The translations under genes and the position numbers were made by a program. Below, piece by piece: positions 3,596 through 62,890 of a DNA stretch of 64,000 nucleotides. The notes under the pieces are model-generated. The model did not search any database, was not told where the DNA came from, and worked only from the letters and a program-made list of their open reading frames with translations. The stretch spans positions 310,001-374,000 of the forward strand of contig NIVC01000945.1 of NCBI GenBank assembly GCA_002269645.1. The letters are read 5' to 3'. The first letter of the stretch is position 1. The number at the start of each line of letters is the position of its first letter. The stretch comes from Macrostomum lignano (lineage: Eukaryota).

Positions 3596-3935
3596 GACAG
3601 ACAGACAGACAGACTCTCTCCTCACTCCCACAGGATCTGAAGGACCGGGACAAGCGGATGCGTCTCCCTGCGATGCAAGTTGGCTTCATCGATTTCGTCT
3701 GCCAGCCAGTTTACACGGTGAGCGCCACCAACCGATACTAAAATTATTTTCAGCTTACTTATAGTAGCATTATTTGCAAATTCCAATTCTAAAAAAATGG
3801 AATTCTTTATTTGAATTTCAGATGCTCTGCGAGTTGTGCACCGGTTTGGAGAGCCTCAGAGATGGTTGCCAAACCAATAGAAAGCAATGGGACTCCCTCA
3901 TTGACAGATCCTCCGCTGAAGGAGTTCGAGGATGA
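488..3935 (+). CDS. GAF-domain cyclic-nucleotide phosphodiesterase, PDE5/6/11 clade (3' part; 5' exons lie before the window)
   Basis: Exons 488-831, 1155-1347, 1873-2177, 3288-3498, 3634-3717, 3822-3935, all GT-AG with matching phases (2,0,2,0,0). GAF-B segment (LLCIPVKN...[10 protein letters not shown]...[16 protein letters not shown]) and catalytic motifs [54 protein letters not shown] at 3933-3935. Confidence 0.95.
1155..1347 (+). CDS. PDE exon: start of catalytic domain
   Basis: tcag|C acceptor, AAG|gtgagg donor; [23 protein letters not shown]; not shown in the ORF track. Confidence 0.95.
1435..1812. repeat. 16-bp minisatellite (GGCAGAGATGAAGGGA)
   Basis: PDE intron. Confidence 0.95.
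1873..2177 (+). CDS. PDE exon: metal-binding HD motif
   Basis: tgcag| acceptor, AG|gtgagt donor; [14 protein letters not shown]...LERHHF...ILATDL. Confidence 0.95.
3288..3498 (+). CDS. PDE exon: DLS..TKPW / EFYEQGD
   Basis: ccgcag| acceptor, GAG|gtaaga donor. Confidence 0.95.
3509..3614. repeat. (GACA)n microsatellite
   Basis: Fills most of the 135-bp PDE intron 3499-3633. Confidence 0.97.
3634..3717 (+). CDS. PDE exon containing the invariant substrate-binding Gln
   Basis: cacag| acceptor, ACG|gtgagc donor; [17 protein letters not shown]. Confidence 0.93.
3822..3935 (+). CDS. PDE terminal coding exon
   Basis: tttcag|ATG acceptor; GCQTNRKQW; TGA 3933-3935; AATAAA at 3938-3943. Confidence 0.88.
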   Translation: MLCELCTGLESLRDGCQTNRKQWDSLIDRSSAEGVRG

Positions 3936-3977
3936 AAAATAAATTTCTTATTTATGTTGAATCGTAGAAGATATACG

Positions 3978-4075
3978 ACAGCTATGAGTATAGATATGAC
4001 ACAGCTATGAGTATAGATTTGACACAGCTATGAGTATAGATATGACACAGCTATGAGTATAGATATGACACAGCT
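3978..4075. repeat. 23-bp repeat x4 (GACACAGCTATGAGTATAGATAT)
   Basis: Just 3' of the PDE stop. Confidence 0.9.
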
Positions 4076-4727
4076 GTGTGCCATGATGCAGCCAAGACTT
4101 TATACATCAATTGAATAGTTTTTCTCTGGTCTGAAACAAACCACAGCCTTCAAGAAACATGCACTATGTGCTTGTGAAACATATTCTTTGTTCCATTACA
4201 GGCATATCTCAAAACACCATTTTTCAAAAAAGTAAAAAATACCAGTATTTTCACCCTTGTAAAGCTATCAATATAACGATTTGAAAATTGACAAAAAATA
4301 TTTTTGAAACTCTGTTTTGCACATTCGATTGTGATTTTGCTAATTATAGATTGATACTATTAAGCAAATAAACAGCTTTATTGTAAAGATTTTCTTTTGC
4401 TAATCTCTTTCTATATGTATTTTGCTTATCTTACTAAAAGCAGTACAGAGTATTGTTAGAAATATCAGTTTTATGTATTGTGGGGAACAATTAGTACTTT
4501 TTTGTCACAAAGTACACACTAATCACGTTTAGCATGCATTGAGTGCATGGCAATGAGATCACTTGTGCTAGCCTTAGCTTTGAGATGCTTTTGTACAACT
4601 CCTGTAGAATTTGTTTTGCCTTTGATAAGTTTTTTGAATGAGCTTTTTCAGTTTATCAGTTATTCTATACATCAATTTTTCATGGTCTTTGTTTCCTCTT
4701 CTGGATAGAACAAAGTTCCTCTACATC

Positions 4728-4843
4728 CGTGTCTTTGTTCCTTCACTTCCGTGGCTTTGTTCCCTTCACTTCCGGGTCTTTGTTCCTTCACTTCCGGGTC
4801 TTTGTTCCTTCACTTCTGGGTCTTTGTTCCTTCACTTCCGGGT
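4728..4843. repeat. 22-bp repeat (GGGTCTTTGTTCCTTCACTTCC)
   Basis: Between PDE and coe 3' ends. Confidence 0.9.
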
Positions 4844-5447
4844 TTTCCTACTTCCACTGTCTGGACTCCGAAATTATTGTTTCGTGATTCACTCTTCAGC
4901 GAAGATTCCAGTCATACTGGGTAAGTTTTCATACTTACTAGACAAGGACTATTTATTGTCAGAGTTCAGTAAAATTAAATAAGCAAAAACCCGTTAGAAG
5001 TAGGTCTTACAAGCAGATAGATTTGAGGGATTATTTATACATATTTTTCAATGCCGTAAAAGTACAATAGATTTATTCTTATAAAATATAACACAGTTCC
5101 CTTACAAAGACAAAGACAAGCATCAAAAACCTGGTGACAACGGAAACAGATAGCAGAATTGGATAATTAGCACTTTAATAAATAAGCAAACGACAGCTGA
5201 TGTACTTTGTAAAATGTACTTTTTCCACTGCAATTATAAGTCGCACTACTAGAAAAAAGAGATGAATTACAGCAATTAGAAATTTACAGAGCAGATTAAC
5301 TTTAGTTTACAAAGGACAAACGAAATTTAATCAAATTAAGCGCGGGACCAACAGTTCTTGTTTTACATTATAACAAACGGAGACAGTGTGATATGAGTCG
5401 GGCGCGAGCTGGAGATGATATGTTGGCATGGTCCGTGGTTGCCATGG

Positions 5448-35304
<29,857 letters not shown>

Positions 35305-37680: not shown

Positions 37681-40587
37681 CAGCAAATGCTCTGATCCTA
37701 ATAAAACATCCACTAATCATCTCCAAAAACGTTTTCCTTTGATTCAAATGTGTTACCTTTTCTATTAAACGAGTCTAACCCTGAAATCTGTATTAGAATT
37801 TGAAGCAATAAATATATTTATATGTATTAAAAGTTATGTATTTTATGTTTACACACAGATTAAGTAAAAAAAGACACTTAAACTCATTTAAACGTAAGCT
37901 AGTCACGAGTACTCTACTCAAAAAGTAGTCATTGAAGCATTTATTTATGCGTGTTAAAATTTGAAACAAAAACCTGTTTACTCGGCGTAAAAATTTATAA
38001 CTTTGCCTTTTATCGCATCAGGAAATTATGAGGAACCTGTAGCACGTTTCTGAACTGTTGCTCAAAAAAACTATAACTGAAAATCTCAACAAAACAAACA
38101 AAAATTATTCAGAATACTAGAATAACAAAATCAAAATTGATTTGAGAAAAACACTGAGAACCAGAAATGGAGTGTAATTGTCTAAGAAGGTGCTAATTTT
38201 CTAATAGAATTTGAGATTAAAGTGTGTGACGGGCATAATAAAATATCTAGGATTGCGCAAATTGATAAATATGCAGATTGCAAACGTGCGTTTCAATACT
38301 TTTTTATTAAATCGTGTTTTAAGTTGACTTGCAACTTATTTACAGAGCACAGCGAACCAGTTGAGATGATGAGCCATAGGCAAAAACAAATTAAGCGTGC
38401 TATAATACTAAATAACTAAGTTTTAAGCGCGCTACTCATCTAAGTAGCCTGAGTAGACAAAATGATACCAAAAAACTCGAATAAAAGTTAGTTTAGAATC
38501 ATTAATACACGCGCAACAACTATTCACAGAGCAAATCACAGCCTTCTTTGATGATGCCTTAGTTTAGACAAGTTTGATAGCAGAGTTACAAAAAAGAGCA
38601 CAAAAAGCAACCATTACAGGGTGAGTTTGAGTAAAAATGAGGCGATTTTCGGTGAGATATTAATGACTCGCCCTAGTGAACAAATGGAAGAAATGTACAA
38701 GTTCGGAAATGCTTCACAGCATCGTCAGTGTATAGATTGGCAGGTAATAGTGCATTAGGCCAAGCTAACAGAGTCGATCGCTAAATTTCCATGTGTGAAA
38801 TTGTTTCTTTAATTGTTGCACAGACTTGTCAATCAATCATGTACTACTAATATGCGCTGGCGAAACTGTACTGTAAAACTAAGATGAAATCGATGAAACA
38901 GATGAGTAAGAATGAGGAAAGAATGGTTAAATAACCTTAACTACGGAACAACTTCTTTACAAAAGTGACATTATAAAAAAGATAGGGAAACTAATTAAGC
39001 ATAAAAAATCAGATCTGTCAAAGCAGCAAAAATATGTACAGTTTAAGGCAGCAGAAGGGTGAAATAAAAGCCAGTGTCACAAAACAGTTCTAAAACTATA
39101 TAAGCATTATAGAAAGTTGCGCTGCTAATTGTGAAAAACATGTTATATACATTTTGCCTAATATACATTCGTGATAGTACATGTCAATTGCACCTTGTTG
39201 ATATGAGCATTGTTATTAATCTATAGTCATAGCATACAAAGGGTGCAAATCCATAATAAGCAGTACAAATACCAGTAGCTATACGGTAGTTACAGTCAGT
39301 GGAAGACCTTGTGACGTTTGTTGCCGCATGTGAGAAAAACAACAAGCAAAAAAACTGTACATGGCATTCATAAAGTTACTAATTAAAACAAAGTTCTCTG
39401 TATACTATATCGACGAACTAAGCTGTCAAACACAATAGCGCTTATTGATGAATAATGATAGTAGATACCTTAAATACAATACGAAATACTGAGACAGACA
39501 ACAAAATCCTGGAATGATGCTGAGTAGAAATGTCAAGTACTACGTAGAAATATTTAACCTATAATTCAATATTTTCATAGATATTCATTAGTATTATATT
39601 CTATTATTTAAATATTCACTTCTTAGCTTTGCCAAACTTCCAGTTGAAGTTTTGCGATATGGTATGGTATTATAGTTAATAAAAAACTTAGCCACTAAAA
39701 CAATTACATATTCACAGTCCATACTCACTACTCCGCGGCTGAAGTCAGCTCTGCGTTCATTCTAACCTCTTTCTTTTCTTCTATCTTCTTCTAGATCAGA
39801 TTCGCAGATGGGTCTGCCCATACCAGACGCTAATAGGTGTCACCAGGTTCCTGTTTAGATGCTGCATTGCCGATTGGAAGTTTGCCAGCGAACAAAACGG
39901 AAGCTATTGGTTTCGTTGCAGCTATATTTATAGCAGTTTGCACCCAGCTGCACACTGTAAACAGATTATAAACACAATTCTATATAAAGCAATCATAATT
40001 AAAACTGAAAATTTCAAGCATATATAGTTTGCTTCCAAAGCTTACCACTTTTGTAGAGATTAAATCTCTGATAGAAGCTGTGCAGGTAGGAAGCAGCAGC
40101 TTACCCGCGGCCTCTCCTAGCCAAGCCAAGAGCCAAGGCCGATGCAGCGCCTCGAGTTCTCCAGACCTTAACCTATTTGCTTTAAATAGCGAGACAGAAT
40201 CGCCTGAAATTGGGGGGGGGGGGGGGTGGTGGGTTGAGATCGGGCTGCGAGGGGTGGAGGGGCGGGGGCGGCACCTTCCGCGGGGCCTCCGCCCAAGCCC
40301 AGCCAAACCGAACCAAAGCCTCCCCCCCAACCCACCACCCCATTGCCCCAGGCGAGTCCAGCAGCACCGCACCCCAGTGCGCAGCTGCAGGACTGCAGGA
40401 TAGGCTAGGTAAGTGATTAAAACCTAAACGCAAACAAGCACAGCACAGCAGGCGCAAAGGTGAAGAGAGAAAGATAGACAGAGAGAGAGAGATGGAATCG
40501 ATTTTCTCTGCTCGATAGCTCACCGCCCACAGCGCACGCTAAGAAGTGAGCCATGCAGCCAGTCAGCCGCCAATTTACCTTCCTTAC

Positions 40588-44384: not shown

Positions 44385-45450
44385 TTTGATTTGATTTGCC
44401 ATTTCATTTGAGTGGGGCGCCAGTTCATTTGAGTTAGGCGCCATTTTATTTGAGTGGGGCGCCATTTCATTTGAGTTAGGCGCCATTTCATTTGAGTGGG
44501 GTGCCATTTCATTTGAGTTAGGCGCCATTTCATTTGAGTGGGGCGCCATTTCATTTGAGTGGGGCGCCATTTCATTTGAGTGGGGCGCCATTTCATTTGA
44601 GTGGGGTGCCATTTCATTTGAGTGGGGCGCCATTTCATTTGAGTGGGGCGCCATTTCATTTGAGTATGGCGCCATTTCATTTGAGTGGGGCGCCATTTCA
44701 TTTGAGTGGGGCGCCATTTCATTTGAGTTAGGCGCCATTTCATTTGATTGGGGCGCCATTTCATTTGAGTGGGGCGCCATTTCATTTGAGTTAGGCGCCA
44801 TTTCATTTGAGTGGGGTGCCATTTCATTTGAGTTAGGCGCCATTTCATTTGAGTGGGGTGCCATTTCATTTGAGTTAGGCGCCATTTCATTTGAGTGGGG
44901 TGCCATTTCATTTGAGTTAGGCGCCATTTCATTTGAGTGGGGCGCCATTTCATTTGAGTGGGGCGCCATTTCATTTGAGTGGGGCGCCATTTCATTTGAG
45001 TGGGGCGCCATTTCATTTGAGTGGGGTGCCATTTCATTTGAGTGGGGTGCCATTTTATTTGAGTAGGGTGCCATTTCACTTGAGTGGGGCGCCATTTCAT
45101 TTGAGTTAGGCGCCATTTCATTTGAGTGGGGTGCCATTTCATTTGAGTTAGGCGCATTTCATTTGATTGGGGCGCCATTTCATTTGAGTGAGGTGCCATT
45201 TCATTTGAGTTAGGCGCCATTTCATTTGAGTGGGGCGCCATTTCATTTGAGTGGGGCGCCATTTCATTTGAGTGGGGCGCCATTTCATTTGAGTGGGGCG
45301 CCATTTTATTTGAGTGGGGTGCCATTTCATTTGAGTGGGGTGCCATTTCATTTGAGTGGGGTGCCATTTCATTTGAGTGGGGCGCCATTTCATTTGAGTG
45401 GGGTGCCATTTTACTTGAGTTTGGCACCATTTCATTTAAGGAAGCGCCAT
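44385..45450. repeat. 21-bp array (GTGGGGCGCCATTTCATTTGA)
   Basis: Source of the MAPHSNE/TQMKWRP ORFs. Confidence 0.97.
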
Positions 45451-46019
45451 TCCACTTGAGTGAAGTGGCAAAACTCAGCCATATACTCGTAATTCTCAGT
45501 GTAAGCCATGAGGCATAGCCCCTGCCTCTACCCTCCCCCGGCACCCTTTGGGTACGCCGACATATGCTACATGCATGCACAGTACAAGACTGAGAAGAAG
45601 GGCCAAAAACAATATCCACCCAACCAAGAATAATTTTCACGTACGAATATACATTCTGATTGTATACACCAACATGTTGCAAGGAGCCAGTTGGGTTATA
45701 AAATATAACGATAAATTTTTCCATAAATTTTCACCCACGTGGCCGCGTGCACAAACACTGCATACACATTCTGTACCAAGCATTTGCTATAATCAGAAGG
45801 TAAAGAAAAACATGAAATGTAATTTTAGTCGATTCGGTCAGCACTAAAAAAACACGAGGGCATGAGAAAATAAAATAATGACTGCCTACACAACAAGCGC
45901 AGAGTCAATAAACTAAAATAGCACAGTCATTCAATAGCTGGCCTTTTCTAAAGCTTGTACACGTGATTTAACGGTAACCCCATTTAATCAATGAATTGTG
46001 AACATAGAAATGTTACATA

Positions 46020-49000
46020 CTTGCCCGCCAAGCTTTTCCCGCAGGAGATTTGCCGGCAAGAGATTTTCCCGCCGAGATTTGCCCGCCGAGATTTGCCCGC
46101 CGAGATTTTCCCGCCGAGATTTTCCCGCCGAGATTTTCCCGCCGAGATTTTCCCGCCGAGATTTTCCCGCCGAGATTTTCCCGCCGAGATTTTCCCGCCG
46201 AGATTTTCCCGCCGAGATTTTCCCGCCGAGATTTGCCCGCCGAGATTTGCCCGCCGAGATTTTCCCGCCGAGATTTTCCCGCCGAGATTTTCCCGCCGAG
46301 ATTTGCCCGCCGAGATTTGCCCGCCAAGCTTTTCCCGCCAAGCTTTTCCCGCAGGAGATTTGCAAGCCGGGCTTTTCCCGCCAAGCTTTTCCCGCCAAGC
46401 TTTTCCCGCAGGAGATTTGCAAGCCGGGCTTTTCCCGCCGAGCTTTTCCCGCCGAGATTTTCCCGCCAAGCTTTTCCCGCAGGAGATTTGCAAGCCGGGC
46501 TTTTCCCGCCAAGCTTTTCCCGCCAAGCTTTTCCCGCAGGAGATTTGGAAGCCGGGTTTTTCCCGCCGAGCTTTTCCCGCCGAGATTTTCCCGCCAAGCT
46601 TTTCCCGCAGGAGATTTTCCCGCCAAGATTTGCCCGCCGAGATTTGCCCACCGAGATTTGCCCGCCGATATTTGCGCGCCGAGATTTTCCCGCCGAGATT
46701 TTCCCGCCAAGCTTTTCCCGCAGGAGATTTTCCCGCTAAGCTTTTCCCGCAGGAGATTTTCCCGCTAAGCTTTTCCCGCAGGAGATTTTCCCGCTAAGCT
46801 TTTCCCGCAGGAGATTTTCCCACCAAGCTTTTCCCGCAGGAGATTTGCGCGCCGAGATTTTCCCGCCAAGCTTTTCCCGCAGGAGATTTGCGCGCCGAGA
46901 TTTTCTCGCCAAGCTTTTCCCGCAGGAGATTTGCGCGCCGAGATTTTCCCGCTAAGCTTTTCCTGCAGGAGATTTTCCCGCTAAGCTTTTCCCGCAAGAG
47001 ATTTTCCCGCCAAGCTTTTCCCGCAGGAGATTTTCCCGCTAAGCTTTTCCCGCAGGAGATTTTCCCACCAAGCTTTTCCCGCAGGAGATTTTCCCGCCAA
47101 GCTTTTCCCGCAGGAGATTTTCCCACCAAGCTTTTCCCGCAGGAGATTTGCGCGCCGAGATTTTCCCGCCAAGCTTTTCCCGCAGGAGATTTGCGCGCCG
47201 AGATTTTCCCGCCAAGCTTTTCCCGCAGGAGATTTGCGCGCCGAGATTTTCCCGCCAAGCTTTTCCCGCAGGAGATTTGCGCGCCGAGATTTTCCCGCCA
47301 AGCTTTTCCCGCAGGAGATTTGCGCGCCGAGATTTTCCCGCCAAGCTTTTCCCGCAGGAGATTTGCAAGCCGGGCTTTTCCCGCCAAGCTTTTCCCGCCA
47401 AGATTTTCCCGCCGAGATTTGTCCGCCGATATTTGCCCGCCGAGATTTGCCCGCAGGAGATTTGCCCGCAATGCTTTCTGTCAGCAGTGCATTGGGGGGG
47501 GGGGGCAATGCAGACGAAATCTGCCGCGTGGCTACGCTCGTAAATTTGCTGCAGGAAACACAGCATTGCGAGCAAATCTGGGCGGGAAAAGCTCAGCGGG
47601 AAAACCTTGGCGGGAAAATCTCCTGCGGTAAAAGCTTGGCGGGAAAATCTCCTGCGGGCAAAGCTTGGCGGGAAAATCTCCTGCGGGAAAAGCTTGGCGG
47701 GAAAATCTCGGCGGGAAAATCTCGGCGCGCAAATCTCCTGCGGGAAAAGCTTGGCGGGAAAATCTCGGCGGGAAAATCTCGGCGGGCAAATCTCGGTGGG
47801 AAAATCTCGGCGGGCAAATCTCGGCGGGAAAATCTCGGCGGGCAAATCTCCTGCGGGTAGGGGGCGACCGGGACGACCAAAGTCGGGCCCGGGTCGGGCC
47901 CGGGAATGAGGACTCGGGCCTGGGTCGGGCCTCGGGAATTCGGGACAAGATCTTTAGGACAGCTCAATAATTGGAAAAAATCATAATAAATCTTAATACT
48001 TTTAGCATATGCGGATTACTATTAAATATACAATAAATATATGAATTTTTAAATTTAATATAATATATTAAATGTATAATAAATATATGATAAACATCAA
48101 ATATATTATAATATATAAATACATTAAATATATAATAATATATAAATATAATAAATATTATTATTATTTAATACATTAGTTACGACTTCAGAATAGATAA
48201 GAGTTACATTAAAAGACTTAATACTCAAATATCAATATACTCAATAGTTCAAATTCAATGTCCCTGTGTGGCACAAGTACTGTGTGTGTGCCAATGACAA
48301 TGACACTAACAGGCAGTGAGGTAGGCAAGCAGGCACTGCGGCAGTGCGGCTGGCACTGGCAGTGGCAGTAATCAAAAAGAAGAAAAGCTGAAGCATTAAG
48401 TGTAAGGCACTTGGCATTGGAAGCAGTAAGGAAGTAAGAACCAAATCAATTGATTGATTCTTTTATTTGAATTTTTAGTTCCTTTACATAGCTTCAATGT
48501 AAAGAGCCATGTACACAGTCAGTATTCAGTAAGACAACAAGACAAGACAACAGAGCAGAACACAAATGAAGTGACAACACAACACAACACTCAACTGTCT
48601 CAACAGAACAGGCAAACAGACAATGGAAATACAAGTAATTAGCTGATACCTGCCTACCTGCTCACCTACCTACTTAAACGAATATGATTACGAATACGAT
48701 ACTACAAGTCTACGACTACGACTACCTACGATACAAATATGAACACGATTACAAACTCTAATAGATAGCAAACTTCTTGGAAAAATGGTTGCCTTGGCCC
48801 TTAATAGGTACTTCTTGGAATGTAAATAGGAAATGTTATTTACAAAAGCTTAAAAATGACAAATCAACTTTTTAAAGAATCATATTTTTGCTTTTAGGCT
48901 GCAGCCTGCAGCGTGTAAAGTGGAATCAATATTGCAAAAAAGTATTGCAAAACTGTTTTAATTTTATCTTCCTGGAAAAAATCCGATCTTCCTGGAAAGT

Positions 49001-53582: not shown

Positions 53583-54001
53583 CTAACGAGACTCCAGTCT
53601 CGACGGTGAATTAGATCGCGACCGTTCGATCGAGCGCAAATCTCGTTCGAATTTGCGTCCAAACCTTGATCTAGACCTAGACCTAGACATCGACCTGGAC
53701 ACCGATCGCTTATAAGACTGAGAACCGTCCACAGATGGCGAAGTGGACGGACTCACACGAATAATTGGCTCAATGTGTCGTCTCCTCATGGGTACGAACT
53801 CGCGTCTACGAGAACGCGACCGCTCAATTTGCGGTCGGCGATGCGCCTGCTCAGATGATCTGTATTGGTCTCGGGGATGCCTGCCGGCATTGCCAAACGA
53901 AGACCGATGCTGATGATAGCTTCTATACGAACGGCCGCGATAGTCTCGACTACTTTGAAATCGGCGTCGAACATCTCTTCGGTGCTGCATTTCAGCTGGC
54001 G
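53583..54001 (-). CDS. SRSF10: SRSF10-like terminal exon (RS domain)
   Basis: aaacag|CG acceptor in phase 1; RS/SP dipeptide-rich; TAG 53583-53585. Confidence 0.85.
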
Positions 54002-57000
54002 CTGTTTTAGATTTGTTTTGGATGTTGCAGTTTAATTGCAGGCATTTGGACACGACCTTGGAGTATGCTTTCTATATTAAAAAGTCACCTGTTTTTATTA
54101 GCATGTAAAGCTTGTAGATAGGTTTTGCCGTGGGCGCAACTACGAATACATTCAATGAAGAGTCTGTAAATACCTTTGTTCAAGGGCCCCGGTGCGTGAG
54201 AAACTACGACATAACACCTTTAAAGGGTACTACAATGGGAGCACTAGTAATGTATATACATTCCTTCCTGCAGGCAGCTGAATACTCTCCCTTGAGGGGA
54301 ACAGCAGTATACAACTGTACGTAAGATGGGAATGGGAGTAAGTATGGGAAACACAGGCTTCAAGTTTACACGAAACTGTTACAGTGTCAGTTTAGAATAA
54401 TCCAATTAGCTTTAAAACTAAATCTAGAGCAGTATAGTTGATCTAAATCCCGTTTTGCTATTCCAAAAATATTGGGACTCTTCCCAAGTGGGTCGCCATC
54501 ATAAGCTCGAAAAATCACATTGTCAAAAAGTTTAGCAACCACCATCACAAACTCGAAAAGTCATATCGTCGAAAACTGATTTAGCATCTCTAGCTCTAAC
54601 CCTAACCCCAAGGCACCAACTCTAACTCTAACCTAACCATGAACCCTAAGGCACTAACTTAGCTTGTGATGGAGGATGCTAAATCAGTTCTCGACGATGT
54701 GAGTTTTCGAGCTTGTGATTTTTTCTAGCTTGTGATGGTGGTTGCTAAACTTTTCGACGATGTGATTTTTTGAGCTTGTGGATGGCCCCCTTCTAAGCCA
54801 TAGCAAATCTATCAAAAACAAAAAGACCCTTTATATAAATACTAAAAGCGTAATGTTTTAAAAAATATGAAAGTAAAAAATTCAGATATAATCGAATCGC
54901 TTACATTGTTTAGCATTCAAGAAGAACCCTTCATGATTACGAATGCACATGGCAAACTGCACGACTGAATACGACTGCAAATTTCTGTATAGCACGCACT
55001 ATGCACTGCATTTTAAACTCTGCATGTCACCTTCGGAAACTGATGAGAAAATTGCTGAACTGTAACCATGAAGTTTCTCATTTTCTGAGTCAAGCATTAT
55101 AAAAATGCACCAGTTCCCTTATCAGAAAGAGAAAGCATGCAGTATCAACTCATAATTCATAAGACAATCCAATGCTTTCTGTGACTGCGAAATCCATGCG
55201 CTTAAGAAGGATGCAATTCATGGAGCTGATTTACCGCTGATCAAACTGACTGCGCTGTAATTTTATTCAGTGATAAAACACTGCGGCACTGAACGACATG
55301 TTTGGATTGCTGGAAAATAAGTTGAAACAGCTTAAACCTTTTTGCTTGTGTGCAGTCAACAGTGATGTTAACAGTAAAATATTACATACAACTTCGCGTG
55401 ATGAATCCAAAATTCAAAAAGACGGAATCAGTAAGTCATAAAACTTGACAGACTCACTTTTTCTGGGTCCTTCGGCGATCTCCACTGTGACATTGTGGCC
55501 TAACAGGATCGATCCGTTGGTGTGATCTCTAGCAGTTGCGGCATCGTCGGGGTGAAGAAATGTGCAGACAGACAGCCAAAAAGCACAAATAAGATGACAG
55601 CAGATTGATTGAGTGGCCATAATTGATGCGTTTTAAGGCTCAATGGTTAAGGAAACTAAATTCAATAGAAAACAAGGCAAGAAAAATTTCAATCATATAG
55701 CAGTCTGGCTATTCCTATAGTGGTCCGATGTGTCAAGAAATTTGAAATGATGACAGACAGATGATTTGAAATTAAAAATGCTTAACCTTGTAATAGGGGA
55801 AATAATGGTTCAAGTCAGGCGCGTCGCCACCGGGGAGGGGACATGTCCACCAGTAAAAGCTATGGGGAGGACATGCCAATGCTTCGTCCCCCCCCCACCC
55901 AACCTTTATGAGTCGTGGTAATCAATAGTTTTTCTTCAGGGCGCCAAAATATAGTGCCTGCGGCGCCAAAATGAGTGCCTGCGGCGCCAAAATGAGTGCC
56001 TGCGGCGCCAAAATGAGTGCCTGCGGCGCCAAAATGAGTGCCTGCGGCTCTAAAATGAGTGCCTGCGGCGTCAAAATGAGTGCCTGCGGCTCTAAAATGA
56101 GTGCCTGCGGCGCCAAAATGAGTGCCTGCGGCTCTAAAATGAGTGCCTGCGGCGCCAAAATGAGTGCCTGTGGCGCCAAAATGAGTGCCTGCGGCTCTAA
56201 AATGAGTGCCTGCGGCGCCAAAATGAGTGCCTGCGGCTCTAAAATGAGTGCCTGCGGCTCTAAAATGAGTGCCTGCGGCGCCAAAATGAGTGGCTGCGGC
56301 GCTAAAAGGAATGGCTGCGGCGCTAAGATGAGTACCCGCGGCGTTAAGATGAATTCTAACAACACGATTCTTAAAATAATGGAAATGTAGGAATTTAGCC
56401 ATGTACATGTACATGTTGAATTCTTGGCTTTGTCCCCCCATAAAATCCATGGCGACGCCCCTGGTTCAAGTTAAATACAAGAACCTGGAAGCATGACTGA
56501 CACTGCCAGACTAAAAGAATCAGGGGGATGAATGCCAACTCATTCAGTAATAAAAATGTGGTTTTGCATTATTTGTAACAATTATCAAATGGTGTATCAA
56601 ATAAAATTTTAACAAAAGGATATTCAATGAATGCATAGCCCTTGAATTGCTGAGTCAGTCGATCTGCTGGTATATTTACTGAAAGAATGTCTCCAAATTG
56701 TTCATAGTAGAGTTGTAGCTCTTCCACACTAAAATGCAAGTAAAGTTGTTATGAGGTAACTTTAGTAAAAAGGTACAAAAAGATTAGATTGAATAGCTTC
56801 TATGTTAAATTTTTTACTTTAGAATAATAAATAAAATTAAATATTCAAGTATTTTAAATATAAAAAAGTTGAGTTATAGCATTTTCAAATAAAAATACAA
56901 GCTTAAATATTTTGGTTTAGAGGTGCAGAATTAACAAATTTTATTTTCATATTCATGGCATAGCAACATATCTTGCATCACACAAATAGAGATATAATTT

Positions 57001-58270
57001 GATTGGCTGTAACTTTTATATACTAGCAGACAATGGGGTGAAACTTTAGATATAGCTAGTGTGAGGTACATATTATGACTAGGCAAGTTTTATCATTGTT
57101 GAATGGAGAACAAGGGCAGATCTAAAGGAGGGGCCAAGGGGGCCATGGCCCCTTTAGCTGTGGCCAAAAAATGGGCTATACTATTTTGGTTTGCGACTAT
57201 GCCAGTCCTATTTTCCAATAGTGCTTAGTAAAGCTTGCTTACTCTCAAAATTTTTTTCAATCCATGCCTAGTGGAAAACTGCTTAAATATACTAGATTTG
57301 ATGCAAATAAAATTTTTATAATAGCAATAGAAAGTATCATTTCATAAAAAAACATTGTATCTAGATATGCTTTCACCTATCAATGATAAAAACTAGCCAA
57401 ATCACAATAGGCAGCTCATATTAGCCATATATTTGAAAGTTTAATAAGTTTAAGCTTTTATTATCTAGAATCTTTGGCTCTTATCCCAAAATATGAGTTA
57501 AAAGAGAATGGTTTTTAGGAACTAAAATATCTTTCTTTAACTGTTAATAAATATAATACTTTGAGTTTAAACATTTTATACATTAATGCAATATCATATT
57601 CTATCAACTTTTACTTAATCAGTGTATATTATTTAATAAAAATATTTTAAAGAAAAAATGGTATGCAATATTAATAGGGGCAAAAATATTATTTCATTAT
57701 TTTATATTAAAAGACAAAGCTTTGATAATTTATAAATAATAGGCCTAGCTTTTATTGAAATAATCAATAATAATATAAGAAATAATAGATTAGCAACCAA
57801 AGCAAAATCAAAAGTAAAAACATACTAGGATTTATATTTTGATAGGCCTAATAATATGGAACACATCAGTGATATAACTAGGATTTTCCATTGTGGGATG
57901 ACACATGTTTAGTCTAGGTCAAGGGCCAATAAAAGATAGAACAAAAGTGGTACTCAGCCTAGTAGCTACTGTATCATAGACCTTTATTATCCTTCTAAGC
58001 AATTAGGAAGAACAACCTCCCTATCCATATCATTGCATAGCCTAATATCTAGGTTTAAACTATAAAATAACCTATATAAATAAGTAACTAAAATTGCATT
58101 AAGAAAAAAAAATATTAAGCTTGCTAAGTGACCAAAAGAATCAATATTTATAAGTTAATTAGGTTAAAAAAGTATAATATATCAGATATGACTTTGAAAA
58201 CTTACGTGGCATCATGAGCAATTGGCTTTATAAAGATAGTAGCTTTGTCATATCCTTGGGGGCAAGACAT
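53583..58270 (-). CDS. SRSF10: SRSF10/SRSF12-like SR splicing factor (one RRM plus RS domain), 230 aa
   Basis: Exons 58206-58270 (65 nt), 56624-56728 (105 nt), 55458-55561 (104 nt), 53583-54001 (419 nt); sum 693 nt, open frame. MSCPQGYDKATIFIKPIAHDAT|VEELQLYYEQFGDILSVNIPADRLTQQFKGYAFIE|FLHPDDAATARDHTNGSILLGHNVTVEIAEGPRK|TPAEM...RSRSRSR. RNP1 KGYAFIEF; GPRKTPAEM parallels GDRKTPxQM of SRSF10/12; intron 2 is AT-AC as in vertebrate SRSF10. Confidence 0.88.
54490..54790. mobile_element. Short palindromic MITE-like element with telomere-like core
   Basis: About 100-bp inverted arms (GCCATCATAAGCTCGAAAAATCAC... / ...GTGATTTTTTGAGCTTGTGGATGGC) around degenerate CCCTAA/CTCTAA repeats 54590-54660. 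Confidence 0.7.
55458..55561 (-). CDS. SRSF10: SRSF10-like coding exon 3 (RRM helix 2 and beta 4)
   Basis: Preceded by AC (55562-55563); A|gtgagt donor. Confidence 0.88.
55562..56623 (-). other. U12-type (minor spliceosome) AT-AC intron, 1062 bp
   Basis: 5' end ATATCCTTTT (56623-56614), 3' end AC (55563-55562), TTCCTTAAC at 55654-55646; removal restores GAA TTT in RNP1. Confidence 0.9.
55816..56463. mobile_element. hAT-type MITE (648 bp) carrying a 21-bp minisatellite
   Basis: TIRs CAGGCGCGTCGCCA (55816-55829) / TGGCGACGCCCCTG (56450-56463), 13/14; perfect 8-bp TSD GTTCAAGT (55808-55815, 56464-56471); internal (GGCGCCAAAATGAGTGCCTGC)n about 55940-56345. Confidence 0.9.
56624..56728 (-). CDS. 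SRSF10: SRSF10-like coding exon 2 (RNP1)
   Basis: cattttag| acceptor; ends GA|ATATCCTTTT (U12 5' splice site). Confidence 0.9.
58206..58270 (-). CDS. SRSF10: SRSF10-like coding exon 1 (RNP2)
   Basis: ATG at 58268-58270; AC|gtaag donor; an AG at 58277-58278 suggests a further upstream UTR exon. Confidence 0.75.
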
Positions 58271-59239: not shown

Positions 59240-61060
59240 CTGCCTCCAACGCTTTTGAGAAGATGGTCGAACTCTAAATCTATAGCAGTGCAAATACGCT
59301 GTTCAGGGGGTCAAATTCTTGGCGAAAGGTTGTCCGCAAAAAGGGATCCAGTCAGTTGAGCCGTTTCTCGGCCTGATCGAATTCTTCAGTCGTTTTATTC
59401 CGGGACTCGTGGAAAGGAGCGAGCAACAAGCCTTTCCAACAGTCCGAGACCGCATTGCATGCATGCAACACTACGCTGATATTCTTTGATTTGCGCTGCC
59501 AAACCGAACTCATCGTTGACGCCAGCCCTACAACGCTACAAGACTCGGTGCCAATTCTCTGCCAGGTGGTCCAACCGACCGCGGAGCGTCCTGGCCGGTT
59601 GCATCGCAAGTAGATCTTTGTCTGCACTCCAGTCTAATACTCGCAGACAGTGAGAGGCTTTTAGCAATCAAGTACGGACGTCAGAAGTTTCGGCACTACC
59701 TCAGCGGTGTAGCAAACTTCACAATCGTGACCGATCAAGCCTCTGACCTTCATGTTTTAGCCCAGCTCGCGCCCATTTCCACGCATCTAACGCATTGCAC
59801 TCAGCACCCAGGACTTGCAGTTCAACGTCGTCGATCGACCAGGCCCATTCAACCTAAGGGCATTCTCAGTCGGCAGCCCGAACCCATTCCAAAAATGGTC
59901 AACCTCGGCTAGATGTAAAACACCAACTACAGCATCGTCCAACGACACTAAGAGGACTGTACAGTATCTGCTGCAAGTAGAAGCAAGCAAGCAAGGAGGC
60001 AACGGCCTCCTTTCATCGGCAATGTCCTCATTGCGTACCGGCAGTTCGGATCTGCGGAACGGAAACATCGGCAAAAGGACGCGGCTCAACAGAAGCTTCA
60101 GGAGTTCTTTTAACAAGACTAGCGACGTGTGATCTCCGAAGCTCCACAGTCGACCGTTCTTTAGTTGCATGTAGCTCACAAGAAGTCATCAAGGCGAGAC
60201 AAAAACTTTTCTGCGACTCAACTTAAACTCTAGTGGCCAGGAATATCAGCTGAGGCTAAACGAATGATGGCGAAGAGTCTATGTAGAGTGCGCCGCCGCG
60301 AATCATCAAGCTGAAGCCCCAGCGGCCTCACTACAACAAACCGAACTGCCGGAGTTATCGTGGTCCATCATAGTAGAATAATTGAATTTCTCGGTCACAT
60401 CAACGGACGACAACTTTTAGTGATTGTGGACCACCATTTGCACTATCCGATCGGAGTCCACCATCGCAGAGTGCATCAATCGGCAATGGAAGCAAATGTT
60501 TGGAATTTCCAAGCAGATCGTGACTAACAACGGCCCACCATTCTCGTCGGAAGCATTCACCGGTTTTATTAAGAGTCTTAATTGTGAGACCAGCCACCGT
60601 CGAATCCCGCCGTACCATTTTGAGGCCAATGGCACCATATGGAGCGCATCAACAGGCCCCTGAATTAACAAGTTTCTACGCATCTCCAGCACCCAAGGCA
60701 CCGACTGGTGGATTTCACTATAGAAAGTGGCTCGCCGCGTATCGCAACGGGAGCCACGGAAGCGTTGCCGGCCGACCTGATGTTTGAGAGGCCAGTTCAG
60801 GACTGCATTCTGAGCACAACCAAGGGGATCCCAGTGTTGGCGGCCAAGAGGCGAGACAACGACTACAAGGCCGCGATGAAAATTCACGGTGCGAAAAAAT
60901 GGTAAGAAAGCATCGCATCCAAACCGGGGACAAGGTTTTGAGGAGGCGAGTCAAGCTCTCTAAGACGGACACCCCCTTCGAAATCGATCCCTGGACGGTC
61001 TACGAGATCAAAGGGGATTCTGTCGTCTAAAAGTTCGATTGGGGGAGGGAAGAAGTTATA
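59240..61060 (+). mobile_element. Decayed Ty3/Gypsy LTR-retrotransposon pol remnant (RT end, RNase H, integrase)
   Basis: With stops and frameshifts: CLQRF*EDGRTLN..CKY...KFL, FLGLIEFFSRFIP, TELIVDAS, KFRHYL...FTIVTD, FLGHINGQLLVIVD, IVTNNGPPFSSEAF, PPYHFEANG, PADLMFER, GDKVL...PWTV; RT-RH-INT order; purine tract 61041-61050. No LTR pair found. Confidence 0.88.
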
Positions 61061-62890
61061 CACGGCCATCCGCATTCTCTGTGCGGCTTTTTTAGTCCAG
61101 TTGCACATTGAGGTGACGTACGTACAATACGTGAAAGGTTGGTTTACGCGCAAATTGATGTAAGTTTCTCTCGTATCGAACGTACCGTTAGGTTGGGTCT
61201 TAAATGTTCAAAACCAAAAATCAATCGCTACATGACATTGACTTAGAAGAGGAATCAGCTTAATTCGTCTAGAAATTTTAAACTGGAGAGGGCCGCAACC
61301 CTTCGGGGCGCCAACATTTGATGTCTTGGTTGGCGCCCCTATCTCCTACGTGAGCGTACCACGATACCACGATACCACGTCCAAGTAGTGATAACAGTCG
61401 AGCTGTCAGCAGTTTCTGGAGGAGACCACCTATTTTTAGGGGGGCAATTTTGTCGACACTGTGCATTGTCTTACGATACTACTTCATTTCTATTTATTGC
61501 ATCGTAATCTTTATAGCGTCAAGCGAAAGCAACTTTTTGCAAGTAAATTTAGGCTGCATAATTTGTACACAACGCACATTGATCTATCATTTTCATTTAT
61601 ATTGGCGTAGACTGCTAAACTTTTCATGGGGGGGGGGGGTAACAGAAACGGCGTGTCTTTGTGGACATTGAGCTGAGCGCCATAATTTCAGCTGCGGGCC
61701 CTGTGGACGGGGTCATGGGAAAGGTTTTTAATCATGAAGGTGCCTTGAGGCCTGAGATCGCTACCTATTGTGGCTATAGCCGCTATATAGTATTTTTCGT
61801 GCTCTATTACCATTATTTACCTGCGCAATATTTCGTTGTTACGTTGTACAAGCCATGTACTTTACAGTACCCGGCCTTATGTCAAACTTATGAAAGTTTA
61901 AATATTAACGAAAATATCCGAGTCCTGCGATTTTTATCTCTACTGGATGGCTCTCCATCTCGGTTAAGTTACATTGATCTCTCGCGAGTCTAAAGGACTC
62001 AAATGGAAAACTGTTAAAATAAAAACGTGCGGATGATGCAGTGGTGCAATATATTCGAATATTGAATACCCGCACATTAATACACAATTAGCTAAGCCTA
62101 GTTTAGACTTATCGAGTACTTCATCGAGCTATCAAATCATATTCGAAAATCGATGCGCATTAAACAATATACGCAATTTGGTATAAGTTTTATTCTTTCT
62201 CAACTGCGCTTGCCTACTGGCTATAGATTCCTATGCAGCAAGGCAAAACGTCGAACTGAACTTTGTGCGTTTTATTTGATAATTTCGATTAATAGCATAC
62301 TTTAACCCGAACATGCACATTGCACACCTACAGAGCTTCAATGCTGGAAGAAAGGCTTTTCGATAAGAAAAACTTCCGAGGCTATATATATTTACATATA
62401 GCTGAAAACTTCAATTGAAAACTGAATTCTCTCTCTGGCCTGCGTCTTGTTGGCTAAAATTAATCAACTGTTGACGCAAACAGTGATATATAAGTTTGAT
62501 GCATTGCATATTTTCTGTCTTTCATCACAATACCGCGCGTTCAGTTCAGGCAATTCAATACAGAGGCCTGTAGTGTATGCATGCATATACAGTATATTCG
62601 ACAAGCAAAATAGAATGCTATCGCGTTCGTTTTATAATTCGAAGACCCATCTATACGCAGTTTATAGCTATTGTACACAAACTAGTGGAGAAAAGCGATT
62701 TTGTTTGAGCAGAATAGAGTTGAGGCAAGAATTCAACAATTCAATAAGGGTAGTGGGGGGCTGAATTGAATCGAATACAAGTGAGTCAGTCCATGCTGAA
62801 GCATGCCTAAAATTATACACTATAAACTCTGTCCCCGCCTCATCTGCTATGCGAACAAAACAAAGCCGAGTTTATAGTTGCCTAGGTGTA

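Follow-up and report, generated by a model that had tools for sequence, protein, structure and literature searches.

A probable U12-dependent AT-AC intron in an SRSF10/SRSF12-like splicing-factor gene of the flatworm Macrostomum lignano

Is an intron that begins with AT, ends with AC and interrupts an RNA recognition motif (RRM) removed by the minor spliceosome, and does the gene that carries it correspond to SRSF10? This question is raised by a locus in a 64,000-nucleotide (nt) stretch of DNA from the flatworm Macrostomum lignano (positions 310,001 to 374,000 of contig NIVC01000945.1; this whole stretch is called the window below). An original prediction, made from the letters of the sequence, had proposed here a hidden SRSF10-like gene with a U12-type AT-AC intron splitting the RNP1 motif of its RRM. 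Our analysis makes it quite probable that this intron, the second of the gene, is a U12-dependent AT-AC intron, and that the gene encodes a splicing factor with a single RRM and an arginine/serine-rich (RS) domain, the M. lignano counterpart of SRSF10/SRSF12. All coordinates are window coordinates, and the gene lies on the minus strand.

An annotated but unnamed gene

The gene turned out not to be hidden. With the RRM as query we found one near-identical protein, P0001, which is deposited as ‘hypothetical protein BOX15_Mlig015740g2 [Macrostomum lignano]’ (PAA74483.1), and whose contig, NIVC01000945.1 (assembly GCA_002269645.1, Mlig_3_7), is 100% identical to the window over 29928-64000. Mapped on the minus strand of the window, the coding-sequence (CDS) exons of P0001 fall at 58270-58206, 56728-56624, 55561-55458, 40203-40046 and 39954-39928, and the GenBank model BOX15_Mlig015740g2 already joins exons 2 and 3 at exactly the AT-AC junction. 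The Mlig_3_7 annotation draws on RNA-seq and a de novo (Trinity) transcriptome, which were processed with STAR, BLAT, StringTie, TACO and TransDecoder (PMC5730564). Since this pipeline is transcript-based, the AT-AC junction reflects transcripts, not an ab initio guess. What is absent from the GenBank record is the identity of the gene and the nature of its AT-AC intron. The parts of the gene are as follows.

58206-58270, minus strand: coding part of exon 1, 65 nt, with the ATG at 58270; encodes MSCPQGYDKATIFIKPIAHDA plus 2 nt and is followed by GTAAGT.
56729-58205, minus strand: intron 1, an ordinary GT-AG intron of 1477 nt in phase 2.
56624-56728, minus strand: exon 2, 105 nt; RRM from beta-1/alpha-1 to the RNP1 residues KGYAFI, plus GA.
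55562-56623, minus strand: intron 2, U12-type AT-AC, 1062 nt, phase 2, within the Glu codon of RNP1.
55458-55561, minus strand: exon 3, 104 nt; encodes FLHPDDAATARDHTNGSILLGHNVTVEIAEGPRK plus 1 nt and is followed by GTGAGT.
54002-55457, minus strand: intron 3, GT-AG, phase 1, leading to the RS exon.
53583-54001, minus strand: exon 4, TPAEMQHRRD... and an RS-rich C-terminal domain, with a TAG stop at 53585-53583.
40046-40203, minus strand: alternative distal exon of isoform P0001, with a clean AG acceptor and a GTAAGC donor; non-RS tail.
39928-39954, minus strand: final coding exon of isoform P0001, CAAGCKLL and TAA.

In the predicted architecture, a single RRM at the N-terminus is joined by a short linker to an RS-rich domain at the C-terminus, as seen from the Pfam RRM_1 match, the RS exon at 54001-53583 and the paralogue P0003 described below. 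The RS exon begins downstream of exon 3 at the acceptor ...AAAACAG/CG at 54001, from which an RS-rich open reading frame (ORF) extends. This exon is outside the CDS annotated at the window locus and inside those of the paralogues P0003 and P0271. The P0001 isoform skips it: exon 3 is spliced over about 15 kb to the two distal exons with clean GT-AG sites, and the product is an RRM-only protein with a non-RS tail of 61 amino acids (aa). These distal exons may come from a real alternative 3′ end or from transcriptional units that were merged.

An AT-AC intron within RNP1

Exon 2 is preceded by an AG at 56730-56729 and ends in ...ATTGA (...GCATTCATTGA). Directly after it, at 56623-56614, stands ATATCCTTTT, which agrees with the U12 5′ splice-site consensus RTATCCTT in the position where that consensus is expected. 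At the other end, exon 3 is preceded by ...CTGTCTGCAC, the intron finishing in ...TCTGCAC, and the terminal dinucleotides are AT...AC. Joining exons 2 and 3 gives VEELQLYYEQFGDILSVNIPADRLTQQFKGYAFIE/FLHPDDAATARDHTNGSILLGHNVTVEIAEGPRK (...QQFKGYAFIE/FLHPDDA), which matches Pfam RRM_1 with E=1.2e-11; intron 2 cuts a Glu codon as GA/A, in phase 2, inside RNP1. The predicted U12-type AT-AC intron of an RRM/RS gene was confirmed in its coordinates, in the GA/ATATCCTTTT boundary, in the AC and in the KGYAFIE/FLHPDDA join.

56614-56623, minus strand: U12-type 5′ splice site ATATCCTTTT, directly after exon 2 and the same in all three M. lignano copies.
55562-55563, minus strand: terminal AC, the annotated productive junction, preceded by about 42 nt rich in T, C and G.

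We also considered whether ordinary splice sites could yield the same protein. No usable AG had been seen nearby, and the final 130 nt of the intron indeed have only two AGs; these stand 94 and 77 nt before exon 3, both out of frame. When all combinations of the 18 GT/GC donors and 7 AG acceptors around the junctions were enumerated, no product retained RNP1 and helix alpha-2. Within exon 2 there is a plausible major-type 5′ splice site, CA/GTAAAT (56675-56685). We rejected it as a donor: its sole stop-free pairing uses an AG within exon 3 and destroys the RRM. Retention of intron 2 adds 17 further codons, YPFVKILFDTPFDNCYK, and then a stop.

Across the whole window the two U12 motifs occur at chance level: the 5′ motif ATATCCTT is found 4 times (3.4 expected) and the branch-site motif TTCCTTAAC twice (0.74 expected). 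The other copies (29374+, 58250+, 58718-, 25574+) have no exon context, and we regard them as chance matches. By contrast with these counts, chance placement of the 5′ motif at the frame-preserving break and of a perfect branch motif in the same intron and on the same strand has a probability of about 3e-5 x 7e-4. What makes the motifs significant is where exactly they stand, together with the fact that two further paralogous loci conserve them; it is not their abundance.

These two loci encode P0003 (230 aa; BOX15_Mlig005216g1), which an exhaustive HMMER search with P0001 detected, and P0271 (Mlig005216g2; 230 aa), found by cluster look-up. Both proteins read MSCPQGYDKATIFIKPIAHDAT VEEL...KGYAFIE/FLHPDDA...EGPRK/TPAEMQHR..., followed by an RS tail. 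Their loci, on NIVC01001737.1 (L002) and NIVC01002081.1 (L006), have the same four-exon structure as the window copy. The M. lignano genome is partly duplicated (PMC5730564), so the three loci are paralogues or homeologues of one another. The length of intron 2 is 1239 nt in L002, 1039 nt in L006 and 1062 nt in the window, and the L002 intron is about 95% identical to that of the window. ATATCCTTTT, a perfect TTCCTTAAC at -85 and the terminal AC are kept in all three copies, and all three annotated CDSs (P0001, P0003 and P0271) use this distal AC only. Differences between paralogues in the RRM exons are mostly synonymous (3/4 in the exon contexts compared).

The same intron across animals

Vertebrate SRSF10 has an AT-AC intron at this RRM position, as the original prediction noted. 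We fetched five SRSF10/12 loci, from a bird, a priapulid, an abalone, an octocoral and a sponge, and mapped their exons. In the lines below, exon lengths refer to the first coding exons, a slash marks the exon boundary, and the last value is the distance from the branch A to the 3′ splice site.

Macrostomum lignano (window): exons 65/105/104; GA/ATATCCTTTT; ...TCTGCAC/; 85 nt.
Limosa lapponica (bird): exons 65/105/104; CA/ATATCCTTTC; ...ACCTTAACACTCACCAC/; 10 nt.
Priapulus caudatus: exons 65/105/104; CA/ATATCCTTTC; ...TCCTTGACCAGGTAGGTAAC/; 13 nt.
Haliotis asinina (abalone): exons 65/105/104; CA/ATATCCTTAC; ...ACCTTAACCAGATCAC/; 9 nt.
Paramuricea clavata (octocoral): exons 68/105/104; CA/GTATCCTTTT; ...TTCTTAACCAGTTAAAG/; 10 nt.
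Corticium candelabrum (sponge): exons 71/105; CA/GTATCCTCTC; ...TCCTTTACGTTTGCCGCAG/; 12 nt.

Alignment of the intron positions shows that intron 2 occupies the same nucleotide position and phase in all of these animals, which upholds the proposed equivalence with the SRSF10 minor intron down to the codon. Exon phases 2, 2 and 1 with lengths of 65/105/104 nt are shared by Macrostomum, Priapulus, Haliotis and Limosa. These lengths had been proposed for the human coding exons; they are now verified on the bird SRSF10 locus, the priapulid and the abalone (the Limosa N-terminus is identical to that of the primate protein). Intron 2 starts with ATATCCTT and ends with AC in Limosa, Priapulus and Haliotis, and it starts with GTATCCT and ends with AG, the GT-AG subtype of U12 introns, in Paramuricea and Corticium. 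In each of the five orthologous introns, a motif resembling TCCTTAAC precedes the 3′ splice site by 9-13 nt.

Since the octocoral and the sponge carry a U12-type intron at the same site, the intron predates Bilateria, and the suggestion that it is ancestral to bilaterians was, in fact, too modest. Deep positional conservation is a known general property of U12 introns (PMC3584512). Quite probably, intron 2 is the flatworm copy of an ancient minor intron that was inherited from the animal ancestor.

The bird locus (L005, Limosa lapponica KZ510915.1, ~3695-5670) provides a further observation. Its gene model, P0195, wrongly reads on into the AT-AC intron (‘QYPFFRWLIN’), splices from a GT located 25 nt further downstream, probably the competing major 5′ splice site that is already known, and continues with non-RS sequence past exon 3. 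The expectation that gene predictors relying on GT-AG sites would break this gene is thus met by the bird model, but not by the flatworm annotation, which has the correct junction.

A proposed role of the minor spliceosome

We observed the sequence signals, their conservation in three paralogous copies, positional homology in five other animal phyla and the junction in a transcript-based annotation. The agent that would act on these signals is the minor spliceosome, with the A of TTCCTTAAC as the putative branch nucleotide. By analogy with characterized minor introns (PMC3584512, PMC7244321), U11 and later U6atac would pair with ATATCCTT at the 5′ end of the intron, and U12 would pair with TTCCTTAAC. 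Joining exon 2 to exon 3 at the AC would then restore the Glu codon of RNP1 and thereby the RRM, while an mRNA that retained the intron would meet the stop 17 codons on and would yield no full SR protein. Because retention stops translation, SR-protein output should depend on minor-spliceosome activity, as has been shown for mouse/human Srsf10 (PMC7244321). From the perfect signals in three copies and the transcript-based junction, we infer that M. lignano keeps a working minor spliceosome.

A distant branch motif and possible alternative 3′ ends

Several observations weigh against these assignments, and a first group of them concerns the 3′ end of intron 2. The relevant features, of which the position of the branch motif had no part in the original prediction, are listed here.

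55646-55654, minus strand: U12 branch-site motif without mismatch, TTCCTTAAC; distance of its branch A to the annotated 3′ splice site, 85 nt.
55630-55631, minus strand: proximal AC, about 17 nt past the branch A; its use would add 68 nt, shift the frame and place a TAG inside exon 3.
55613-55614, minus strand: second AC, about 34 nt past the branch A; its use would add 51 nt in frame (17 aa).
55613-55815, minus strand: conserved block of about 200 nt, from the end of the insertion in the next line through the branch motif to AC 55614-55613.
55816-56463, no strand assigned: insertion in intron 2 resembling a miniature inverted-repeat transposable element (MITE), with 14-nt inverted terminal arms at 55816-55829 and 56450-56463.

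TTCCTTAAC has the TCCTTAAC-like form of a U12 branch site, lies near the 3′ end of the intron and is kept in all three copies. U12 introns usually have no pyrimidine-rich tract, and their branch A typically lies some 10-20 nt from the 3′ splice site, which is a usual property rather than a strict definition. Intron 2 departs from both patterns. In each of the three Macrostomum copies, 85 nt separate the single good branch motif from the annotated 3′ splice site, as against 9-13 nt in the five orthologues, and the last ~42 nt of the intron resemble a pyrimidine-rich tract. The optimum for the distance from U12 branch to 3′ splice site is 11-13 nt (PMC3584512). No match to TCCTTAAC with up to 3 mismatches occurs in the final 70 nt, and a nearer candidate that we considered, TCTTAT at about -28, is weak and reads TCTCAT in the paralogues, so it is not conserved and was rejected. 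Folding of the segment between branch and 3′ splice site gave z-scores of -0.19 and +0.38, that is, no supported structure that would shorten the distance; its minimum-energy stem would leave about 17 unpaired nt. Also within this segment, between TTCCTTAAC and the annotated site, are an AG (about +8 nt, counted from the branch A) and the two intervening ACs (at about +17 and +34), which are absent from the annotated junctions.

It is possible, and we give the idea some though limited credence, that 3′ splice sites closer by are the main partners of the perfect branch motif and that the intron has alternative 3′ ends, forming a flatworm-specific switch for unproductive splicing or autoregulation. 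Splicing to AC 55631-55630 would then give an mRNA with 68 additional nt that is frameshifted and prematurely terminated, splicing to AC 55614-55613 would insert 17 aa in frame, and the distal AC would yield the productive SR protein. The proximal sites are what the U12 distance rule (PMC3584512) and the 9-13 nt of the orthologues would favour. Furthermore, unproductive-splicing autoregulation is common in SR genes, and mammalian Srsf10 uses it around its minor intron (PMC7244321).

Two patterns among the paralogues point in the same direction. The first is the block of about 200 nt from the end of the MITE-like insertion to AC 55613, which has zero differences between the window and the paralogues in the three copies apart from one A>G private to L006, compared with about 5% in the flanking intron and about 2% in the exons. 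This block may be a regulatory element or a product of gene conversion. The second concerns the last 51 nt of the intron (55562-55612), which are open in the frame of exon 2 and contain 4-5 substitutions between paralogues. Here, 4/5 are synonymous in the exon-2 frame and 0/5 and 1/5 in the other two frames, a bias that comprises five substitutions, was seen post hoc and has p ~0.02-0.07. It provides a weak hint that AC 55614-55613 might be an in-frame alternative 3′ splice site.

Against such a switch, all three annotated CDSs use the distal AC only. The 17-aa insert, QSICCHLICAFWLSVCT, is moreover hydrophobic and Cys-rich, and would sit within RNP1. Alternative 3′ ends would, in any case, complement a U12-dependent AT-AC intron and not exclude it. 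Only in its distant branch motif does the locus depart from the known pattern, and this motif is its one new element. Our tentative and rather doubtful interpretation of it is that either the flatworm minor spliceosome tolerates a branch distance about 6 times the known optimum, or the ACs and the ~200-nt block form a lineage-specific switch between alternative 3′ splice sites. If there is such a switch, SR-protein output would be tuned via the minor intron by a route unlike the mammalian competition between major and minor 5′ splice sites.

Relationship to SRSF10/SRSF12

A second group of contrary observations concerns the identity of the gene. BLASTP against human SRSF10 gives 28% identity, in a gapless alignment across residues 10-97 of both proteins (over the 113 residues of it that served as query for the other animals, the human sequence is 100% identical to database entry P0151). 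SRSF10/12 orthologues of other animals (chelicerates, a priapulid, molluscs, echinoderms, cnidarians and a sponge) are, in contrast, 60-72% identical to human SRSF10. A hidden Markov model (HMM) built from 88 SRSF10/12 N-termini gives the flatworm protein 68.7 bits, a range also reached by unrelated RRMs, which score as high as 73 bits; by sequence profile, then, the flatworm RRM appears indistinguishable from generic RRMs. In a search of P0001 against a representative set of 1.84 billion proteins, multi-RRM proteins dominated the ranking, which left orthology undecided, and a PDB sequence search returned generic RRMs only (PABP, PUF60, PPIE, SRSF2), with no SRSF10-specific signal.

Some sequence features do point to the SRSF10/12 family. 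The linker after the RRM is EGPRKTPAEMQ in the flatworm and QGDRKTPNQMK in human SRSF10, and we take the former to agree with the family linker motif GDRKTPxQM. A linker of the form RK(T/K/S)PxxM is not fully specific, as plant SCL33 has RKKPSEM and the RS-rich single-RRM matches P0274 and P0275 also have such a linker. In per-domain phmmer comparisons, the best matches of the flatworm RRM were SRSF10/12 proteins, with 48-54 bits, whereas the RRMs of the top 149 library matches reached at most 45 bits and single-RRM PDB chains at most 45.5 bits. An intermediate protein is P0272, from a Logan transcript of run SRR28720658, which has KGYSFVEF and RKTPGEM and shares 51% identity with SRSF10, as against 36% with the flatworm protein. 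The contig SRR28720658_77351 (L007) of this run is an intron-less transcript that encodes, at 19-834, an SRSF10-like protein of 271 aa with these intermediate identities.

These data could mean that the gene is not an SRSF10/12 orthologue, but another, lineage-specific RRM/RS protein whose similarity in exons and introns is coincidental or reflects older paralogy. The low identity to human SRSF10, the generic-range HMM score and the occurrence of the linker in SCL33, P0274 and P0275 would all be explained. We consider this unlikely, however. The gene agrees with SRSF10/12 in three intron positions and phases (65/105/104), the middle one of these introns is of the U12 type and interrupts the same nucleotide position, the two proteins align without gaps and with equal N-terminal offset, the best per-domain matches are SRSF10/12 proteins, and P0272 bridges the two. 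Orthology rests mainly on gene structure, in addition to the RKTPxEM linker and the RS tail. Because the three intron positions and phases, the class of the middle intron, the N-terminal offset, the linker and the RS tail agree, we think that Mlig015740/Mlig005216 is quite probably the fast-evolving flatworm counterpart of SRSF10/12. The label ‘SRSF10-like’ of the original prediction is accordingly justified by gene structure, linker and RS tail; RRM similarity gives it mixed support.

The remaining contrary observations bear on the splicing machinery and on the junction. An Rfam scan of the 64-kb window at the gathering threshold detected no minor small nuclear RNA (snRNA), nor an snRNA of any kind, and use of the junction is known here via the annotation, not from RNA reads. 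Transcripts with the spliced junction had 0 matches in JGI metagenome contigs, and no Macrostomum proteins were found among those derived from Logan. Removal of a rare U2-type AT-AC intron by the major spliceosome, or a mapping or annotation artefact at a decaying locus, would suit the pyrimidine-rich tract at the 3′ end and the lack of a nearby U12 branch motif, but is highly improbable, given that the 5′ end ATATCCTTTT perfectly matches the U12 consensus (with which alone it was compared), that the homologous introns in five other phyla are U12-type, that three copies, all with intact ORFs and mostly synonymous RRM-exon changes (3/4), retain the signals, and that three independent gene models give the same junction.

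Repeats and other features of the window

The arms of the MITE-like insertion in intron 2, CAGGCGCGTCGCCA and TGGCGACGCCCCTG, are 93% complementary. The insertion encloses a tandem array of 19 copies of a 21-nt repeat (55940-56343), and each of the three paralogues has a different array length. Another array of this 21-nt repeat family, with 70 copies, is found at 17759-19233. The window is generally dense in minisatellite arrays, with 43 Tandem Repeats Finder rows that score at least 400 and have periods of 4-300 nt; examples are found at 1-428, 6771-7966, 21990-23198, 44398-45462 and 46024-47477. Most of the long ‘ORFs’ in the window are translated minisatellite arrays. Upstream of the gene, at 59300-61200 on the minus strand, there are several overlapping stop-free stretches of 90-177 aa, which could be the remains of transposable elements.

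Comparison with known systems

The AT-AC intron of vertebrate SRSF10 and its coupling to the minor spliceosome are already published (PMC7244321), and the flatworm intron is an orthologue of this known ancient minor intron, in a gene that is annotated but unnamed. Current knowledge is not overturned, as the positional conservation of U12 introns and the presence of minor introns in a flatworm, Schistosoma, were already known. Minor introns in that genus have been described (PMC10639083), and we found nothing specific in the literature on U12 introns of Macrostomum, or of flatworms beyond Schistosoma. What our analysis adds is, first, that a GenBank ‘hypothetical protein’ of the regeneration model M. 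lignano is identified as an SR protein of the SRSF10/12 type, with intron 2 as a concrete marker for minor-spliceosome activity in a free-living flatworm. Furthermore, since the SRSF10 minor intron occupies one and the same nucleotide position in animals ranging from a sponge to a bird, the link between an SR regulator and the minor spliceosome is as old as animals and is not a vertebrate feature. Finally, with 85 nt between branch and 3′ splice site, the intron offers a testable exception to the strict distance rule of U12 introns.

Generic U12-type introns have the consensus 5′ splice site RTATCCTT and the branch motif TCCTTAAC, and may have AT-AC termini (Turunen et al. 2013, PMC3584512). 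Intron 2 resembles them in its 5′ consensus, branch motif and AT-AC termini, and in residing in an ‘information-processing’ gene. It differs in its branch distance of 85 nt, instead of the optimum of 11-13 nt, and in the T/C/G-rich tract before its 3′ splice site.

In mammalian Srsf10, productive splicing of the AT-AC intron couples the level of the protein to the minor spliceosome (Meinke et al. 2020, eLife, PMC7244321). A mammal-type competing major 5′ splice site was sought downstream of the flatworm AT-AC 5′ splice site, where there are only a weak GTTAAA at +10 and a weak GTTACA at +43, the latter not conserved in the paralogues; nor did we find in intron 2 a convincing exon-3-like poison/polyA exon, and what it does contain is the conserved block of about 200 nt described above. 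The flatworm RRM is only 28% identical to that of human SRSF10, the branch lies at 85 nt rather than at the 10 nt of the bird, and the flatworm intron bears a MITE-like insertion. However, vertebrate SRSF10 (FUSIP1/SRp38), with its AT-AC intron between exons 2 and 4, has the same combination of a single RRM and an RS domain, the same codon position and phase, and the same flanking coding exons of 65/105/104 nt (bird locus L005). By analogy, retention or mis-splicing would likewise truncate the flatworm RRM, and protein output should depend on minor splicing.

The orthologues of Priapulus, Haliotis, Paramuricea and Corticium differ from the Macrostomum gene in being 60-72% identical to human SRSF10 and in having the branch at 9-13 nt, but they agree with it in exon structure and in both the U12 class and the position of the intron. 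The cnidarian and sponge introns are of the GT-AG subtype, whereas the Macrostomum intron is AT-AC, like those of the other bilaterians.

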